DNA of 9,460 nt from Bugula neritina (lineage: Eukaryota; Animalia; Bryozoa), in contig CAXIUT010000079.1 of assembly GCA_964035545.1 (NCBI GenBank), forward strand, positions 1 through 9,460. The letters are read 5' to 3'. Made by a program: the position numbers and the translations under genes. Shown here in pieces: positions 1 to 9,460 of the stretch; the stretch's first letter is position 1; each line of letters begins with the position of its first letter. The notes under the pieces are model-generated. The model did not search any database. It saw nothing but the letters and a program-made list of their open reading frames with translations, and was not told where the DNA came from.

Positions 1-69
1 CCAACCCCAACCCCAACCCCAACCCCAACCCCAACCCCAACCCCAACCCCAACCCCAACCCCAACCCCA
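1..69 (+). repeat. Left telomere, (CCCCAA)n, the C-strand of a Tetrahymena-type TTGGGG telomere
   Basis: Perfect CCCCAA tandem repeats from base 1, ending CCCCA|TTTTAAAA at 69. No CCCAAA variants. Confidence 0.98.
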
Positions 70-207
70 TTTTAAAATATTTATTCAAAATTATTGAAGA
101 TTTATATGATTTATAACTTTTGATATTTTATTACAAAATATAAGTTGAAAGTGACTCAAATAGTACTCAGTTAAGTTATTACCAACTGTTTCTTCTTCAG
201 ATTATTC

Positions 208-1078
208 ATGTCAAAATAGTCGTTATTAGTCCAATAGATATAAAACTAAAAGCCTTTTAGTTCTTAAAGGAATACAGTATGAAAGCTCAAATTCTCTTGA
301 TGATATTAAGAAAGAAGACTAACTCTTATCAAATAATTCAAGAAAAGAATAGTAAGTTGGATAAAATTCTATTTCAAAGAGTACTAGATTGAAAAGTAGA
401 CATCATATAGTAATAAAAGATAAAAATAATAATCAACAAACGACTTTACATGGTTTTAACTTTTCTTCAAATATTGATATTTCTGAACAATAGATAATAG
501 ATAAAATAAAACAAGAAAGTAATTCTAAAAAGCGTGCTAATAAACAAAAATTAAAATCTAAAAGCAGTAAAAAAAATGATATCAAATAGTTAGAGAAATA
601 AATATAAATACAAAAACAAAAGAATGGTATTCTAGAATAAAAACTAAAATTAAGCAACTAAAAATATGATCAATTAAGATTACTGCCATAAAAAGTTCAA
701 AAATTAGAAAAAATAATAGTTTAAGATAAAATTAATAGCGAATAATTAAAATTAAGAATAAAAATACTTGAACAAAGATAAAGATAGTTAATAGAAGAAG
801 TTAAAACTAAATCATCGGTTATAGAGCAAGTAGTAGAGTAGAATTTTATTTATAAAGAAAGAGTAATGGAGGTTGAAAGTTTATATGCTGCTTATGACTT
901 TAATGTTAAATAGGAATTGTAGTAATTTGAGAACTTTTCAGACGGATAATCAGTTTTGAAAGAAGAAAAAGAGATAAATGACGAAAAATAATTAACATAT
1001 GAAGAGAAATCCTATGATTTATGTAGTAAAGACTCAATAGAAGAAGTCACAAATTAAATGGATACATTTAGTTTATGA
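208..1078 (+). CDS. Hypothetical Lys/Glu-rich coiled-coil protein (~280 aa); 5' end uncertain
   Basis: With UAR=Glu, one frame is free of TGA from 155 to the TGA at 1076-1078. It encodes heptad-like sequence (IKELEKEIEIQKQKNGILEEKLKLSNEKYDQL...KIKILEQRERELIEEV-like). That frame has no early ATG. ATG 208 (MSKESLLVQEIENEKPFSSERNT) joins it through a 34-nt GTATGA...TAAG intron (277-310) or a 19-nt intron (219-237). The start and intron are inferred. Confidence 0.6.
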
Positions 1079-1233
1079 AATAATGATCTTCAATTCATTT
1101 TTATGATATTCTTAAATAGTATTTGATTTATGAAGTTAAATTGAAAAAAACAAAAATTATTTTTTATTTTAACCACATTAAGATAGTATGTGATGGCTGT
1201 TATTATCTAACTCCTTAAAATTCAAATATAATA

Positions 1234-1802
1234 ATGCAAAGACTGGGTAAAGGTCGTGCTCCTACTCGTGCAATCAAGGCCAAAGAACATGATGAAGAAA
1301 CCATCAATGAGCTCAAAGAAGCCTTTAAGATCTTCGATAGTAAGAACACAGGTACTTCATTTATAAAATTAGGAGAAATTGATGCTAGAGAACTTAAAGC
1401 CATTATGAAGGCTTTCGGCATGGAAGTTAAGAAACAAGATGTGAGAGATATCTATGCTGAAATGGGAAAATAGATCAAAGAAGGTTTAAATTTCAATGAA
1501 TTTCTTGGAGTTATGACTAACCGCATGGTAAATTTAATTTGAATTAGGGTCCTCGGGATTCAAAAGATGAGATTCTTAAAATATTCAAATTATTTGATGA
1601 AGACAACTTGAACAAAATTACTTTTAAAAACTTGAAAAGAATCGCTGTAGAAGTAGGAGAGAAAATCCCTGATGATTAGTTGAAATAAATGCTTGAATAA
1701 GCAGATAGAGATGGAGATGGAATGCTTAATTTCGATTAATTCTACAGAATTATGAGAAGAAGAGGAGATCCTCTTGACGATTTCGATAGTGATGATGAAT
1801 GA
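1234..1802 (+). CDS. Centrin-family EF-hand protein, 175 aa, 3 exons (1234-1351, 1373-1527, 1548-1802)
   Basis: Spliced translation: ...ELKEAFKIFDSKNTGEIDARELKAIMKAFG...DSKDEILKIFKLFDEDNLNKITFKNLKRIAVEVGEKIPDD[E]LK[E]MLE[E][12 protein letters not shown][E]FYRIMRRRGDPLDDFDSDDE-TGA. KITFKNLKRIA and ADRDGDG are centrin signatures. The spliced length is 528 nt, a multiple of 3. Confidence 0.95.
1352..1372 (+). other. Spliceosomal intron, 21 nt (3n, no stop codon), centrin intron 1
   Basis: GTACTTCATTTATAAAATTAG. Removing it restores the 12-residue EF-hand loop DSKNTGEIDARE. Confidence 0.88.
1528..1547 (+). other. Spliceosomal intron, 20 nt, centrin intron 2
   Basis: GTAAATTTAATTTGAATTAG. It contains an in-frame TGA, and its removal is required to join MTNRM to GPRDSKDEILK. 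Confidence 0.93.
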
Positions 1803-1854
1803 TATCATGCCTTTCATTTCTTAATAAACATTAAATTTATTAGACTTATTTAAA

Positions 1855-2343
1855 TCATTTTCTTTTAAGAGAAGATTCCCACTCTTTAAGTTGAATTTCA
1901 AAATATTAATTGGGTTTAACCATTGGTCTTTTTTTCTTAACAAACAAAAATGCTTCTTCAAAGCTAATCTTGTATTTTTTCATGAGATAGGCAATAACTA
2001 AAGTTGGACTTCTTGATATTCCAAAAGCACAATGGACAAAAATACCTTATTTTGATCTTGCCGCCTTTTCTATAAAGTCGCATGTTTCTTCAAAAAATGG
2101 CTTAATAGACTGATTTAACGAATCTTTGACTTTAATTTGTAAGTATTCGAAGTCATTTTTAAAGTGTGTCATCAGTTCTCCACCTGCAACAAGAATATAC
2201 CTTATTCCTAAAGATTTTAGAAATGTTTTATTTTTAGCACAATATTGATCTCCAATATAAACATTCTTAACTATTTAATCAATGTCTATTTAATCTACAG
2301 GACATTAAAAATGTTATTTTTATGGCTTGTGAAGAATTAACAT
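1855..2343 (-). CDS. Atypical dual-specificity protein phosphatase (DSPc domain), 162 aa, intronless
   Basis: ATG 2343 to TGA 1857-1855. The translation has D[E]IVKNVYIGD, GIRYIL, the catalytic motif VHCAFGISRS (HCx5R), AYLM and RPMVKPN[E]YF, all DUSP hallmarks. Confidence 0.95.
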
Positions 2344-2428
2344 TTTTCTAGAATTTTAGACTAACTAATTTCAATAAATATAATATAAAACTTTAAAATT
2401 TATAAGTTAACAGATATATGGGCGATAA

Positions 2429-3772
2429 TCAAGCTGCCTTAACACACTTCTGTTGCTTTTCATCGAACTTGGTACCTTCGACACATGAAACACAGAGTTG
2501 GATACTTTCCAAGAATTTAGAATTTGCTGGACATTCTTTACATTCTTTACCATTCCAGATCGGTTTAGTCTTAGGATCACATGGCTTGCATTTTTGAGTT
2601 TATTCATCAAGAGAAGGAGCATTTTCTGGACATTTACAAGTTCCATTGACAAGAGGATAAATGCATCCCTTTGCACAGGATTTAGAAGTGGCATTCCAGA
2701 CAGTTCCAAGTTTACAGACTTAACAAGTTGATGTTTCATTATTCCACTTAGTATCGCAAGAAACACAAACTTTTTCTTTATTTAAATGTGGCTTATCAGC
2801 AGGACAGTTACATTTTTCTTTTGCTTGATCATAAGTAGCTCCTTCAGGACATGTGATACATTCTTTCTTTTTTTAATTCCAGTTTTTAGGAGGTGGGCAA
2901 GAAACACATTTTTCATCAGCACCAGTTTTAAAATCTCCAAGACATGCACATTTTTTAGCTGCAGCATCCCAAGTCTTGTTATCTTTACATTCAGTACAAG
3001 TTTTATCAGTTTTATTCCAAAATGTTTTGCATCCGATACATTTATTTTCTTTTGAAAGATAAGGTTTCTCATGTGGGCAAGAACATATTGATTGAGTCAA
3101 ATTGTAGACAAAACTTTCAGGACACATCATGCATTGACTTATTTTATTATCCCAGACGGCTGGCTAAGGACATTGTTGACACTTTCCAGTTGAATCAGGT
3201 TGATAGCCTTTTTTACAAACACATTTTAAAAGTTTAGCATCCCACTCTTTATTATCTTCGCATGGAGCGCAGTTTCCTGAAGCATCTGTTGCAGGCTTAT
3301 CTTTAGGACATTTGCAGTCTAGAGTTTTGGGATCTAGTTATTTACCTTTTTAGCATTTAACTGGATATGGTTTGGCTGGGAAAGAATCTCCAGTAGGTTG
3401 AACAGGAGGAGGAGTAGGTTGTGTTGGAGGAGGAGTAGTAGGTTGTGGATTAGGTTGAGGAACTTGAGTAGGTTGTGTTGGTGTTGTTGGAGCTGGTTGA
3501 TTAGGAACATGAGGTTGTGCGGGACCTAGAACATGAGGTGTGATGCTGGAAGTTTGAGGTACAGTTGGTTGTGGGTTAGTAGGAGGAGGGATTTGAGGAG
3601 CAGGAATATTAGTTTGAGGAATGGTAGGAGGATTGTTTGGAGTTTGTAAGTATGGGTTCATAGCGATGGCAGGAATTGAATCTGCTTAATGTGAGACTGA
3701 AGGGATCGTCAGATTCATGACGCTTGATAGCATCAATATTAAGAGTAAGAAGGACTTTGTTGGTTTAATCAT
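2429..3772 (-). CDS. Putative secreted protein, 447 aa: signal peptide, Pro/Thr/Gln-rich linker and Cys-rich repeat region (40 Cys)
   Basis: One UAR=Glu ORF from ATG 3772 (MIKPTKSFLLLILMLSSVMNLT) through PTQPTPPP-type repeats into 20 C-x(8-13)-C units (e.g. CPESFVYNLTQSIC, CPEGATYDQAKEKC), ending KCVKAA-TGA. It joins ORF-track fragments 3350..3661 and 2873..3130. Confidence 0.9.
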
Positions 3773-3792
3773 TTCTATATCAAATAAAAAAT

Positions 3793-3809
3793 TATTGAAT
3801 TATTCAATA
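3793..3809. promoter_or_regulatory. Perfect 8-bp inverted repeat TATTGAAT-T-ATTCAATA, 20 nt upstream of the secreted-protein ATG
   Basis: The dyad symmetry is seen directly. A regulatory role is inferred from position only, and AT-richness raises the chance of coincidence. Confidence 0.25.
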
Positions 3810-4019
3810 GATTTTGGTTTAAATAAATCCAGATTGACTGTTGCTGACAAAATAATAAATAAGATTTACTATACTGAACGTTAACTGTATTTTAACACAT
3901 TTCTGACCAAGTAATCAAAGTTTATTTTGATTCTCTTTTTTTTCTAATTGAGTATATTTTCACGTAATTGTAAAAAATAAACAAAAGAAAATTAAATCAA
4001 TCAATATTCCTAAATGTAT

Positions 4020-5057
4020 TCATCTTATATTTGTCCTATCAAAATAACGAGATTTCTTAATAGGATTGACTACTATCTTTTAGTCAGTTTATTCGATAGT
4101 TTTATTTCTATTTCTTCTTAAACTATGTGATTTATCTTCCTTTTAATGAATATCTGGCCATAAAAAACTTTCAGATCCTTTTCTAATTCCCGTATGAAGA
4201 ATTGAACTCTCTTTTTTTGATATATAGCCTGAATTTAACCTAAAATAAAACTATTGATATTGTTTTACTTTATCTTATGTTAATTATGTGTTTTGTTTGA
4301 TCTTAGATTTAAAACTTTTTCCCTTCTTTTTGATATTTTGCTTTTAGATAGGTTTAAAAATAATATTTAAAGATGAATTTTATTTTTATTCTTGAGTTGT
4401 ATTAGTATTTTTTGTTGAAAATGGTTTTATCTAGTGTTTTTCACTGATTCTCGATGATATATCTTCTTAATTATTCTAAATTTTGAAATTATTTTATTTT
4501 AGTTTAGTTTAAAGAGATATATTTCTCTCTTCGAGTGTTTCTTATTCTAATTTTTGTTGCAATTTTTCATTACAGTTATCTGAAAAGTCAAAATCCTATT
4601 CATCTAATTATTTTGAATGTTAAAAAGGACATTAATAACATTCTCCAAAGACTTCATTTTCTTAAGAAACATACTTTTAAACTTTTTCCATAATATTGTT
4701 CATTTATGAATTTTTAAGAACTAGAAGCTATCCTTTGTTCGGAAAATTGCAAAAAGGTTACATTATCACTTCACATTGAATCATCAGATATAAAAGTTTT
4801 AAGTATCTATTTCGATTTTTCTTCCAAAATGTATCTGGAAGTATACGATCTAACTTCTTAAACCATTGTATTAGCTTTATTTTATCATGTCGAGTTAAAA
4901 TTTAGTAAAACTGTGAATTTAATATCACCTACTTCAAGGTGATATATTCAAGTTAAAGCTCCTGAGAAAGATTATTATCATTTTTCGACTGAACTTGTTT
5001 GTTTTTTATTCTTTTATTAACAGAAATAGGAGAACGAGATGTTGGTCTATGAAACAT
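4020..5057 (-). CDS. DUF4485 (CEP112 N-terminal-like) domain protein, 345 aa
   Basis: ATG 5057 to TGA 4022-4020 with no internal TGA. It contains DKIKLIQWFKKLDRILPDTFWKKNRNRYLKLLYLMIQCEVIM[E]PFCNFPNKG[E]LLVL, matching the W..KL...KNRN.Y.KLL..M.....PF...P..G.L pattern I recall for DUF4485. The C-terminus is low complexity. Confidence 0.82.
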
Positions 5058-5146
5058 TTAAGCTTCAATCTAATATTTTAATCAATTTAACGTATAAAAC
5101 TACAGAACTATTTAATATTTATTTGATCAGATAAAAATCTTTAAAA
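5058..5146. promoter_or_regulatory. Putative bidirectional promoter; 89-nt AT-rich gap between divergent ATGs
   Basis: Start codons are head to head at 5057 (-) and 5147 (+). Promoter function is inferred from the geometry. Confidence 0.5.
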
Positions 5147-5494
5147 ATGATAGCAAGATTGACACATAAATGTAGGATAACCTAAAAAGATATATATTTG
5201 TTTGGAAAAGCAGTTGGAGACGATAATCCTGTTCATAGAGATCCTTAATTTGCTGCTAAAACTAGATTTAAAACTCCTATAGCTCATGGAATGACCTCTC
5301 TTGCTATTTTAAATCAAATTATACCCAAAAATTATCAAATGCTTTCCTTTAATATTAAATTTATGAGACCTATCTATCCAGAATACTAACTTATTTCTTA
5401 ACTAGAAATCAAAGAAAATCTTGAATTTTAAATGATCATATCAAAGGAAAACTAAAAAATCACCTCAATCAAAGGATTCTTAGAAACTCTTTGA
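5147..5494 (+). CDS. MaoC-like hot-dog-fold dehydratase / (R)-specific enoyl-CoA hydratase (PhaJ/HTD2-like), 115 aa
   Basis: MIARLTHKCRIT[E]KDIYLFGKAVGDDNPVHRDP[E]FAAKTRFKTPIAHGMTSL...IKFMRPIYP...TGA. It has the hydratase-2 motif GDxNPxH...F...IAHG with the catalytic Asp/His. It is absent from the ORF track because of internal TAA codons. Confidence 0.92.
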
Positions 5495-5561
5495 TAAAAA
5501 TGATTTTTTAATACTGGAATCATCAAAAAAAGTATAAAATCAAATTTATTAAACAAGTTGT

Positions 5562-6218
5562 TCATTTTTCTGTTTTAATATGTAGTCTTTTACTTTCTAA
5601 AGCTAATATTTCTTCCATGAGAACCATTTTTTCAATAGATTGTACTTTTTTCAATCGACGCATTTATTGATCACTAAGTTAAGAATTTAATGACTATGAT
5701 TAAGATCGATGCTGACTGCTTAACCTTCTATAATATTTTATTTTTTTCTAAAGAGAAGATCCATTCTTTTCTTTTTTTGCACTTTTTTCTTTAGACAGAG
5801 AATTAAACTTACCTTTTCGATATTTTTTGCTTTATGATGATAACTTTGTGCCGAAATATTCTTTGTTTGGATGATTATACTACTTCAAATAATTTTTTAG
5901 TTCTCTACTCGCAGTACTATCTTCTATATTATTGTTAGAACACAATATTTTTCTATTTTTTCTCTTTTTGTCTTTCCGATTTTTAGTCTGTTTATTAATT
6001 GGAAGGTCTTGTAAAGAGTCAAAAAGATTAATCTTACCTGAAACTTCATTAATACGAGTCGATGATTTAAGATCTTACTTTTTAATTGGCTTTTGCATTG
6101 CTTTCCGATCTGACTTGAGTTTATCTTTGACATTTTTCAAAAGATTTGGAGACATTATTTTATCTCTATTTCTTCCTTTGCTTTTTGATTGTTATTTCTA
6201 TCGTTTGTTATGATACAT
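5562..6218 (-). CDS. Hypothetical Lys/Arg/Ser-rich basic protein, 218 aa
   Basis: ATG 6218 (MYHNKREKEQSKSKGR...) to TGA 5564-5562 with no internal TGA. It has an NLS-like KNRKDKKRKNRK and a helical C-terminus (QEMRRLKKVQSIEKMVLMEEILALESKRL). It fills the gap between its neighbours. No domain recognised. Confidence 0.72.
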
Positions 6219-6277
6219 TAGACAATCTTAATCTTTGTCTTTAGTATAAAGATTATATTTATATTTACTCAAAAAAT

Positions 6278-6418
6278 TAAACTTGTACTCTTTATAGTAG
6301 TAAATTGATAAGAAAGTGTAAGAAAGTGAAGCAGTCCCTTCCTCTCACTTACAGTGAGCTGTCACAAGGCACTATTCTGTAATGCACCTTGTTTTGACGT
6401 GCTGTCACTTCAAGTTTA
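6278..6418 (-). ncRNA. Unclassified structured RNA element in or after the RACK1 3' UTR
   Basis: Core 6324-6410 is ~46% GC (40/87) in otherwise very AT-rich intergenic DNA. Nested complementary segments: 6324-6333/6400-6410, 6344-6349/6353-6358, 6361-6364/6395-6398, 6365-6372/6384-6391, plus an outer 8-bp pair 6278-6285/6411-6418. G-U wobbles work only on the minus strand. Confidence 0.6.
6309..6328. repeat. Tandem 10-bp direct repeat (TAAGAAAGTG)x2
   Basis: Seen directly. It overlaps the base of the structured element. Confidence 0.8.
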
Positions 6419-6424
6419 CATAGA

Positions 6425-7477
6425 TCATTGAGCTTTCTCTTCAGTTACTTAGACAACCTTGATATCTCCATTGCTGTAGCCGATGAAGAGTCTGTTTCCA
6501 AGGGTGTTCCATGAGATTGAGGTCACTTGGTGGAATTTATCTTGTTTGGCTTTCTTTGATTGTTTCTCTTAGAGATTTTTCTTTCCTTCAAGTTTGAAGC
6601 TTCCTTCTCCGATAACTGGGGTGTCTTTAGCTTCAAAATCCCAAATTTTCCATCCAACTTCAGTTCCAATAGCAATCCAGGTGCATCTTGGGTTGAAAGC
6701 AAGGCAGTTGACTGGGGCTCCAGCATCATGGCTTGGGCATGGCTTTTCAACATCACTGAAATCAAAAACTTTAACTTTTTTGTCTTTTCCACCAGTTACG
6801 ATGAAGTTTCCTCGAGGAGAAATAGTAATAGCATTGATATTGGCATCATGGACTTTAATGCTGTCCTTGATATTAAAGGTTTGGTTGTTCCAGACTTTAA
6901 GATATCCGTCCCATCCAACTGAAGCAAAGTATTGTCCTCCAACTGAAGTTTTAGAAGAAGTAGGGATAAATCTAACTTTAGAAACCCAATCATTGTGGTT
7001 GTATTCCTTAACAGTGTGTTTGCAGTGACCCTTAACGTTCCAGAGTTTGATATCTCTATCAGCTCCTGATGAAAGAATATATCTTCCATCTGAGGAAATA
7101 GCACAAGAAAGAACTTCTTTGCTGTGACCATCTTCAGTAAATCTGATGGTAGTCTTTCCATTTCTGAGGTCCCAAAGTCTCATAGTTTTATCCCATGAAG
7201 CTGAAAGGAGATAGTTGTTGTCATTGGTTAAAGCGAGGTCGCTAATGAAGTGAGAGTGTCCAGTAAGAGATTGAACGGGGACACCGAAATCTGAGACAAC
7301 TTTAGATTCATTGTTGAATTTCCAGATAAGGATGGTTTTATCTCTGGATGCAGTGATGAGAACTTGAGTATCTTCATTTTCTTTTTGAGGATGTCCTGTT
7401 TCAATAGCAGTGACCCAATCAGCATGTCCTTTAAGGTGACCAATTTAAGTGGTTCTGATGATGCTTTCTTGATCCAT
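6425..7477 (-). CDS. RACK1: RACK1 / Asc1, 40S ribosomal WD40 beta-propeller protein, 350 aa, intronless
   Basis: ATG 7477 to TGA 6427-6425. It contains GHLKGHADWVTAI, TASRDKTILIW (ribosome-binding RDK), FGVPVQSLTGHSHFISD, SASWDKTMRLWDL, HNDWVSKVRF, SVGWDGYLKVW and LFIGYSNGDIKV. These are RACK1-specific motifs spread over seven WD repeats. Confidence 0.95.
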
Positions 7478-7527
7478 AAATAATCTAATTTAATATTAAT
7501 AAATTAATTTAAAAAGATATCATTTGC

Positions 7528-9320
7528 TCACATATAATAACGCTGGTAATATCCTCGATTACCCTCTAAAGGTTAAAATTATTGAATCGGTCTCATAGAT
7601 TCCTGACTTTTAACTCTATTAAGTAAAGCAGCTGCTTTTTATCTGATTTTCTTTTTCTTTTAAGCACGATTATTACGTTCTTGCTAGACTTGATCTTCTC
7701 CTTAATTAAACTTGTTTTTGTTGACTTTAACATTTACTCTATGTTATTCTTTTTTCTCTTCAAGATTATTGATATTAATATTGATAGAAGTCATTCTATT
7801 TTGAGGAGAAACACTTGGATTTTGATATCTAGTCCTACTATAAGGAGCAGTAGGTTCTCCTTTTACTTAAAAATTTCTAAGAGTTGAAGGTTTAGACTTC
7901 TCATTATATTCTCTTTCAGTATTTACTTTAGAATTAGACCGATATTATTCATTATTCAAAATAGATGAATATTTAGTTTTCGGAGAATTGGGTATCCAAG
8001 GTTTTCTTGGATAATTAATCTCTTCTCGACTCGAATAACTCTGAATTTGATTTCTCTGAAATTCTTAAGCTTAACTTTCAATATTTTAATAGTATCTAGG
8101 CATCCCTCTTGGCGAGTCTTCTTTCTAATCTTCAGCTATCATAAACTAATTAGGAATAGGAAAATGATTATGTTCTATTTCATACTGGTAAATAGAAGAT
8201 TGTTTATTGTAAGGTTGTTTATTGGGTTGTTGAAGTGGATGTTCTGAATATCTTGGCGACATCATAGATTTCTTTTTAAAATGATCTTTATTGATAACAT
8301 GATTGTTCTGAGAAGTTTTATAAGATTGATCTTCAAGAGCTGTAATAGTTATACTTGAAGTCATTGGCTTCTTTTCTATTAGTTATTTTATTCTATGAGG
8401 TTGAATCTGATATTTATTGCTTTTAGATGATAGTTATCTTCGAATAGTTGACTGCTTAGGAGTATTGCTTTGTCTGTTTTCTTTATCCAATATCTTTTGA
8501 TACTTTTTCATGACTTATTCTTGATCAAATTAATCAAAATCTATAAGTAAATAGTTGATTTATTCTTATTTTTGTTAGCGCTATAAATTAAACTCACATG
8601 AGATCTCTTTTGAAAACTTTGTTATTTTCGATAGAAAAATAGAATTTTGAATCAGAGTATTTTCCTATTCCTCATTTTAATCAAAAATATTATGTACCTC
8701 AGGCTCCTCTTCTTTCCATAAAGAAAAATCTAATTGAATATTCGAATTTTAATCAAGAGATTTTCTTTAGAGCTCACTAGAATCAATTGATTTTAAAAAT
8801 TTTGAACTATTTATTGAGATAACCTTTTAATCTGAAACACTATTAGATTAATCACTAGAACCTTCTTCAACAATCATCTTTTTGAGACGCTTTAGACGTT
8901 TTAAAAAGACAGATTTAGTTCTAGTTAGAATCATCAAAGGGTATTCATATCTCAGAATAACAGCATTTCCATAGAATTCTGAATATCAAGGATAATACAT
9001 GCGAGAAGGTTGATTCTATCAAATATTTCTTGTTTTCCAAGAGAATTAACAAGGAAATAATATCTTTTAAGGTACTAATTATTATCAGCATAGATGATAG
9101 TATCTTTGAAGTCAATAGTTGTGGTAGCCACAGTATGATTGAATACGATTTAATTGGTAGGTTTGGTCAAAAAGAAATTAAAATGAATGTCGTATTTTTG
9201 AGTTAGTCGTTGGTTTACTGACTGGGTTCAAAGATGAGTACTTGTAAGACAGTTGTATCTACTCATTAGATGTGATATCGTCAATTTGAATATATTGTAT
9301 TAATAGTTATCTATTTACAT
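7528..9320 (-). CDS. Ciliate-type hypothetical protein (~582 aa; exons 9320-9242, 9217-8999, 8978-7528) with a conserved-looking N-terminal domain and a long disordered tail
   Basis: Spliced N-terminus: M[E]IDNY[E]YNIFKLTISHLMSRYNCLTINQRLTQKYDIHFNFFLTKPTN[E]IVFN...IDFKDTIIYADNN[E]YLKRYY...DRINLLA[E]FY. It resembles an NF..K..NEI...FKD...EYLKRYY motif I recall from ciliate hypothetical proteins (unverified). The last exon is TGA-free for ~1450 nt up to TGA 7530-7528. The start codon and first intron are less certain. Confidence 0.8.
8979..8998 (-). other. Spliceosomal intron, 20 nt
   Basis: GTATTATCCTTGATATTCAG on the minus strand. Removing it joins two reading frames and creates a T|AA (Glu) codon in LLA[E]FY. 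Confidence 0.85.
9218..9241 (-). other. Probable spliceosomal intron, 24 nt (3n, with in-frame TGA)
   Basis: GTACTCATCTTTGAACCCAGTCAG on the minus strand removes the only in-frame TGA (9230-9228). An alternative AG at 9222 (20-nt intron) joins an upstream frame with no ATG. Confidence 0.65.
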
Positions 9321-9371
9321 TTACCAGTCATCATAACTTAAAAATAACTAATCATTACAAATCCATTCACA

Positions 9372-9460
9372 TTGGGGTTGGGGTTGGGGTTGGGGTTGGG
9401 GTTGGGGTTGGGGTTGGGGTTGGGGTTGGGGTTGGGGTTGGGGTTGGGGTTGGGGTTGGG
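9372..9460 (+). repeat. Right telomere, (TTGGGG)n
   Basis: Perfect TTGGGG repeats to the end of the window, in the opposite orientation to the left telomere. Confidence 0.98.

Follow-up and report, generated by a model that had tools for sequence, protein, structure and literature searches.

A conserved three-way-junction RNA in the 3'UTR of ciliate RACK1 mRNA with likeness to the h38/h39/h40 junction of the small ribosomal subunit

Feedback control of ribosomal-protein synthesis by structures in messenger RNA (mRNA) that look like the ribosomal RNA (rRNA) site of the encoded protein is textbook knowledge in bacteria, while in eukaryotes it is rare and the known cases are scattered. Here, we analyse a structured RNA element of approximately 87 nucleotides (nt) that follows the gene encoding the ribosomal protein RACK1 on contig CAXIUT010000079.1 of assembly GCA_964035545.1, deposited under Bugula neritina; the whole stretch, positions 1 to 9,460 of the forward strand, is referred to as the window. 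We know of no bacterial homolog of RACK1. Bacterial ribosomal-protein leaders carry, within the mRNA of the protein, a structured look-alike of its rRNA site, which exerts feedback once the rRNA is saturated (PMC7732827). The leaders for S15, L1, L20, S8, and S6:S18 share the logic that is proposed here for the RACK1 element; they are located 5' and block initiation in operons, whereas the RACK1 element lies in a eukaryotic 3' untranslated region (3'UTR) and its binding by a protein is putative. Closer in position is a hairpin in the 3'UTR of yeast RPS28B, which confers a control dependent on its own protein by Rps28/Edc3-dependent decapping (PMC7732827). Both systems are eukaryotic ribosomal-protein mRNAs with a structured 3'UTR element. 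However, the RPS28B element consists of one hairpin only, belongs to one yeast paralog and acts via Edc3, while the RACK1 element is a three-way junction kept across ciliate classes, and the two have no similarity in sequence or structure. The transcripts of yeast RPL30, RPS14, RPS9, and RPL22 contain rRNA-like structures to which the respective ribosomal protein binds (PMC7732827, PMC8216456); these structures influence splicing from 5' or intron positions, in contrast to the RACK1 element, which is located after the stop codon where no intron is present. A literature search found no paper on such a RACK1 element or on autoregulation of RACK1 by an rRNA mimic, and RACK1/ASC1 is unmentioned in a survey of structured RNAs in fungi (PMC8216456). 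The element is a structured RNA with strand specificity that has not been described before and is linked to the 3' end of the RACK1 mRNA. Besides autoregulation by RACK1, the explanations considered are, in this order, another junction-binding protein, a processed small RNA, a riboswitch or ribozyme, and a bistable switch.

The element covers window positions 6324-6410 on the minus strand, which is the sense strand of RACK1, and its closing helix P1 begins 14 nt past the RACK1 TGA. The letters quoted for this site, about 14 nt past the UGA, in an earlier reading of the window from its sequence alone (the sequence-only reading) are confirmed, as is the contrast that it described between a core of approximately 46% G+C and AT-rich surroundings: the element contains 46% G+C and its flanks 25-30%. 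The three-way junction that it named fold 1 is the minimum-energy fold (-29.5 kcal/mol, z = -3.08, compared with z = -1.23 on the opposite strand), and 3 of 200 shuffled sequences fold equally well. A covariance model, R1, was built from 21 distinct elements, and 25 elements were aligned to it (alignment A3). Compensatory changes occur at 24 of the 25 pairs in A3, and 85.2% of the cells are paired, compared with 64.4% after shuffling (none of 500 shuffles reaches the observed value) and 35-51% with slid partners; A3 is fitted to R1, so these pair counts are biased towards the model, and the folds of single sequences serve as an independent check. Each of the 21 distinct elements folds alone to the same junction, and unconstrained folding recovers it in eight of ten relatives (z from -0.4 to -3.9). 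With R1, scores are 39-89 bits for 24 elements and 20 bits for the most distant of the 25 (L066); chance matches selected by pattern reach 11-25 bits. The fold is real and not a product of chance, and the element is a conserved structured RNA with unusually clear covariation.

Conservation and covariation in relatives had been named as a test of function in the sequence-only reading, and the element is present at every RACK1 locus that can be assessed. Sampling by protein search placed it on the sense strand in all 11 RACK1 orthologs whose downstream DNA is long enough (92-41% identity), at a distance of 14-110 nt from the stop codon across loci. A scan of metagenomes for the invariant core of the element returned 43 stretches, 18 with the helices and 25 unstructured. 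All 18 structured matches sit behind a RACK1 open reading frame, one of which is just 38% identical (L045), while the 25 unstructured ones have no RACK1 and are attributed to chance; no second gene family carrying the element was found among the 43. The loci L045 and L066-68 are single-gene chromosomes of 1.3-1.6 kb with C4A3 telomeres, the repeat with which Chilodonella (class Phyllopharyngea) has been probed (PMC11601529), and by this repeat the element spans at least two ciliate classes. It is therefore common to at least peritrich-like oligohymenophoreans and phyllopharyngean-like ciliates.

The position of the element within the transcript is given by contig L032, in which the RACK1 coding sequence (CDS) is followed by 22 nt, the element, a further 8 nt, and a run of more than 50 A, a layout that is the signature of a polyadenylated cDNA. 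Because this poly(A) begins 8 nt past the element, the element lies inside the RACK1 3'UTR, and it is thus shown to be part of the polyadenylated RACK1 mRNA. In an RNA library of a relative with approximately 93% identity, one contig continues from the CDS into the 5' portion of the element, with carry-over of DNA being possible, and on single-gene chromosomes the element is found between the RACK1 stop codon and the telomere. These layouts bear on the proposal of a stable small RNA in its own right, which would arise by processing of the RACK1 3'UTR or independently of it and would act in trans, for instance in a snoRNA-like or ribosome-associated manner. The compactness of the element, its long closing stem and its high conservation would suit such an RNA, RACK1 genes are generally known to host small nucleolar RNAs (snoRNAs) in other eukaryotes, and contig data cannot reveal RNA ends. 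We nevertheless regard it as quite improbable, as CDS, element and poly(A) stand in one contig (L032), the spacing to the stop codon is tight, on single-gene chromosomes there is just the interval between stop and telomere, and box C/D and box H/ACA are not conserved: neither a conserved CUGA 3' of the element nor a conserved ACA after it was found in the alignments. The three-way-junction architecture, the lack of a conserved ACA and a transcript that runs on to poly(A) also show that the element is not an H/ACA snoRNA.

Searches of the whole window against Rfam 15 returned no match at gathering thresholds, and at E up to 10 two chance-level matches alone appeared, CRISPR-DR65 with 19 bits (threshold 43) and, as the best snoRNA match, TtnuCD33 with 16.3 bits (threshold 80); a search of the window for transfer RNA (tRNA) and transfer-messenger RNA found none. 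The statement in the sequence-only reading that no tRNA cloverleaf, known ribozyme core, C/D box or selenocysteine insertion sequence (SECIS) quartet can be seen agrees with empty Rfam and tRNA searches and with boxes that are not conserved. A role as SECIS or in readthrough was rejected, as no Rfam SECIS model matches, a second in-frame UGA follows four codons after the RACK1 UGA, the spacing to the stop codon varies between loci over the range of 14-110 nt, and the helices lack the quartet. In many relatives RACK1 is closed by a doubled stop, UGAUGA (L031, L035, L038, L043, L044, L032). The reading of UGAUGA as a C box in some loci was ruled out, since these letters are simply two in-frame UGA codons.

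The anatomy of the element, here given in minus-strand order, follows from the fold and the covariation. The closing helix P1, which stands in for rRNA h38, is formed by a 5' strand at 6396-6410 (AAGUGA, bulged C, AGCA, bulged C, GUC) and a 3' strand at 6324-6336 (GAC, UGCU, UCACUU), and its helices 1 and 2 show compensatory changes at 10 of 10 pairs. For its inner part, the sequence-only reading had paired GUCA with UGAC and left AAA bulged; this pairing is found in 59% of cases with no compensatory change in 25 homologs, and instead GUC pairs with the GAC beside AGGAAGG (81% paired, compensatory at four of four pairs). The joiner J1/2 at 6393-6395 is AAA in the window and, by A3, A-rich with 2-5 nt in relatives. 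It leads into the hairpin P2 at 6364-6392 (ACAAGGUGC / GUGCCUUGU), the counterpart of h39, which is 86.5% paired with compensatory changes at nine of nine pairs and whose loop at 6373-6383 has an end, AAUA(G), that is conserved in the alignments. The joiner J2/3 at 6362-6363 reads GA in 25 of 25 elements, the same letters as the h39/h40 joiner of the small-subunit (SSU) rRNA. The h40 look-alike P3 at 6341-6361, supported by covariation and RNAfold, consists of CUCACU (6353-6358) and AGUGAG (6344-6349) around the loop GUA, with compensatory changes at five of six inner pairs. Its closing pair C6361-G6341, which RNAfold predicts unaided, is C-G in all 25 elements and is followed by a 2x2 non-canonical step with AG at 6359-6360 facing AG at 6342-6343. 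The last joiner, J3/1 at 6337-6340, is an invariant AAGG and together with the preceding AGG gives the invariant string AGGAAGG. The invariant core can be summarized as GA / C-(A/U)G-helix-AG-G / AAGG.

The region at 6269-6323 of the minus strand lies outside the conserved element, as judged by a duplex test of the flanks and by the poly(A) site of L032, and contains the distal arm of a proposed outer helix as well as the Sm-like AAUUUUUUGA. Both were part of the bistable switch proposed in the sequence-only reading, in which the three-way junction would alternate with a two-hairpin fold 2 inside an outer helix next to an Sm-like site. AAGUGA and UCACU do occur twice in the window, and fold 2 can form at -23.8 kcal/mol. 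This is, however, 5.7 kcal/mol worse than the three-way junction, and both alternative duplexes are possible in just 2 of the 25 homologs; the outer 8-bp helix (UAAACUUG/CAAGUUUA) is no better with its own flanks (-4.24 kcal/mol) than with mismatched ones (-4.30 kcal/mol), and the Sm-like U-run falls past the poly(A) site that L032 shows for a relative. The switch is largely refuted by this comparison and is hardly tenable. The broader alternative offered in the sequence-only reading, a 3'UTR switch or a novel small RNA, stands as far as an undescribed structured RNA in the 3'UTR is meant, by the covariation and by L032; the switch falls with fold 2, and the discrete small RNA is disfavoured by poly(A) 8 nt after the element and by the lack of snoRNA boxes.

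On the ribosome, RACK1 contacts h39 and h40 of the 18S rRNA through a patch of Arg and Lys residues, alongside uS3, uS9, and eS17 (PMC4666399, PMC3315329, PMC13542104, bioRxiv 10.1101/2023.09.03.556115), and the rRNA-contact motif SRDK is kept in the RACK1 of the window. The core of the element appears to be a look-alike of exactly this site, the SSU h38/h39/h40 junction as the RACK1 docking site on the 40S head, the resemblance in letters and helix order being shown. Read from Rfam structure lines in the order h39 / joiner / h40 / joiner / h38, the junction is ..CAAAGGA / GA / CUGCCAGU-GAUAA-ACUGGAGG / AAGGU / GGGG in Escherichia coli 16S, ..UUAGAGG / GA / CUUUGUGU-GUCUA-ACGCAAGG / AAGUU / UGAG in ordinary eukaryotic 18S, and ..CUAGACG / GA / CAGCUGAC-AAUUUAA-GUUAGAGG / AAGGA / UGCG in a divergent 18S fragment (L160), while the element of the window reads ..CCUUGU / GA / CAGCUCACU-GUA-AGUGAGAGG / AAGG / GAC... 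(P1). In the L064/L066 type of element, the letters are GA / CUGCC...GGAGG / AAGG, and the base of h40 is CUGCC...GGAGG in E. coli and CAGCU...AGAGG in L160. Element and SSU junction share the order of helices (closing helix, long hairpin, short hairpin), the joiner GA, the ...GG / AAG(G) joiner, and the C-G first pair of the short hairpin, followed in E. coli and L160 by non-canonical pairs 2-3 as in the element. The h40/h38 joiner is AAGG in the element, AAGGU in bacteria, AAGGA in L160, and AAGUU in ordinary eukaryotes, whose 18S differs from the element by this joiner and by a Watson-Crick third pair. Other differences are that the element is found in an mRNA 3'UTR and not in rRNA, that its P1 has 10-14 bp compared with 4 bp in h38, and that its P2 is a simple 9-bp hairpin compared with a long h39. 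As an objective test of the likeness, R1, which was built from elements only, was searched against rRNA genes. Its top match in 64.6 kb is the h38-h40 region of E. coli 16S with 15.8 bits and a rough E-value of 0.0036, and it also matches the h38-h40 junction of L160 with 22.2 bits and an equally rough E-value of 6.6e-6.

A fragment or pseudogene of rRNA was rejected as the origin of the element, because approximately 16 junction letters alone match, P1, P2, and the interior of P3 vary freely with compensation, and the Rfam SSU models miss the window. Likewise, the AAUAG of the P2 loop was considered as a copy of 18S 'CUAAAUAG' and put down to coincidence, as the structural positions differ. 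The matching stretch of L160 (431-509) lies in a 987-nt eukaryotic 18S fragment filed under a Desulfobulbaceae metagenome-assembled genome (MAG) and has the junction GACAGCU...AGAGGAAGG in place of the usual GGGACU...GGAAGUUUGAGG. Eukaryotic 18S ribosomal DNA of fungal-, plant-, alveolate-, or ciliate-like type is present in at least 120 records (L070-L189) that were deposited as genomes or MAGs of bacteria or archaea, where it is contamination or mis-binning.

The likeness to h38/h39/h40, which the sequence-only reading had missed, favours autoregulation through mimicry of rRNA over a switch akin to a riboswitch. Invariant junction nucleotides amid covarying helices, close to a poly(A) site, are also what a ligand-sensing riboswitch or a self-cleaving ribozyme that affects 3'-end formation would present. 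The rRNA junction, however, accounts for the invariant letters, the polyadenylated transcript carries the element intact, no such family matches in Rfam even at the relaxed E-value, and RACK1 offers no metabolic logic for the sensing of a ligand, which makes this explanation very improbable.

The best reading, to which we assign a probability of roughly 0.55, is that RACK1 regulates its own synthesis by rRNA mimicry through the 3'UTR element, where both the binding of RACK1 and the repression are inferred by us. The element would be a cis-acting structured domain of the RACK1 mRNA 3'UTR that imitates h38/h39/h40 of the 40S head. RACK1 would occupy the rRNA first, and with RACK1 beyond the free 40S sites the surplus protein would bind the look-alike in its own mRNA, alone or together with a neighbour such as uS9; the bound element would then lower translation or stability of the RACK1 mRNA, resulting in negative feedback. 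The pattern that supports this reading consists of a conserved structure, an exclusive linkage to RACK1, a location in polyadenylated mRNA, and the resemblance of the junction, and an element found exclusively behind RACK1 carries the usual signature of control by the product of its own gene. For the more far-reaching proposition that a 3'UTR decoy of 40S h38-h40 arose in ciliates and has persisted across their classes, allowing free RACK1 to gauge its own excess, we consider the odds to be even.

Several observations weigh against autoregulation by RACK1. The E-values of R1 stem from a brief calibration, and on eight ordinary eukaryotic 18S genes R1 did not recover the junction. The probable 18S genes of ciliates read GA / CU..GG / AAGUU / UGAG, so that the element and the probable rRNA of its own hosts have just the topology, the GA, the C-G closing pair, the GG, and the AAG in common; the contigs in question, which we take to be ciliate 18S by their exact match to a ciliate primer, are a lead only. 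Moreover, electrostatic contacts, as described for RACK1, do not explain why approximately 16 junction letters are strictly invariant, and other head proteins also touch the h38-h40 junction, so the binder could be another protein. The element would in that case be a site for a different factor, either a protein of the 40S head (uS9/RPS16, uS3, eS17, uS10), an assembly factor or an unrelated RNA-binding protein, and would tie the synthesis of RACK1, or the stability or localisation of its mRNA, to the assembly of ribosomes and not to free RACK1. The GA and AAGG letters of h38-h40 are universal and predate RACK1, as they are present in bacteria too, and other partners must therefore account for their conservation in rRNA; strict invariance of the junction letters is also more in keeping with recognition of bases than with backbone contacts of the kind described for RACK1. 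On the other side, the element is found solely behind RACK1 and the 43 pattern matches include no second gene family, and we hold a different factor to be rather unlikely.

RACK1 is an exchangeable ribosomal protein specific to eukaryotes and also a signalling scaffold. If its autoregulation is true, the element would be the first rRNA mimic through which RACK1 controls itself and would join the very few such mimics in eukaryotic 3'UTRs. It would also provide a minimal RNA of approximately 90 nt that reproduces the RACK1 docking site and is of use for structural work on RACK1-RNA recognition, and with such a copy of the docking site the question how cells set the RACK1 level relative to 40S subunits would become directly testable. 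Even with another protein as binder, the element stands as a solid new case of conserved structure in an mRNA, and it would add a new family of structured RNAs from a poorly explored group of eukaryotes.

The window itself is an entire AT-rich macronuclear chromosome of 9.46 kb with C4A2/G4T2 telomeres on both ends. The RACK1 CDS at 7477-6425 of the minus strand, assigned by translation and tblastn with homologs of 92-38% protein identity, has 350 codons plus the TGA at 6425-6427. In-frame TAA and TAG are sense codons in it, and a TAA near the C-terminus aligns with GAA (Glu) of relatives; as far as the alignment can tell, this reassignment fits the peritrich code. Downstream of RACK1, the next gene of the minus strand begins at 6153. 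Between the stop codon and the element, a motif UCUAUGUAAA was read by eye from the sequences at 6415-6424 of the minus strand, and (GA)UCUAUGUAAA or its variants UGUAUGUAGA and UGUUUAUA follow the RACK1 stop in most relatives (L001, L007, L008, L025, L031, L038, L043, L049). The 8-mer GUACAUUA of ribosomal-gene 3'UTRs in Paramecium (PMC2874801) is a distinct motif that corresponds neither to the element nor to UCUAUGUAAA. Past the element, a YUAUCA motif at 6306-6311 of the minus strand recurs at 15-30 nt in L001, L007, L010, L013, L025, L031, L064, and L065 and may be related to 3'-end formation. One and the same RACK1 locus is capped by G4T2 telomere repeats approximately 165 nt past the stop codon in four contigs (L003-L006) and continues into unique DNA in two others (L001, L002), a pattern that suggests alternative fragmentation of the chromosome, or alternative addition of telomeres, shortly beyond the 3'UTR. 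Finally, one contig (run X4) is identical to window positions 6145-6426 and then diverges at the RACK1 stop into 98 unrelated letters; this branch at 6426 could be a germline or alternative form or a chimera of amplification.
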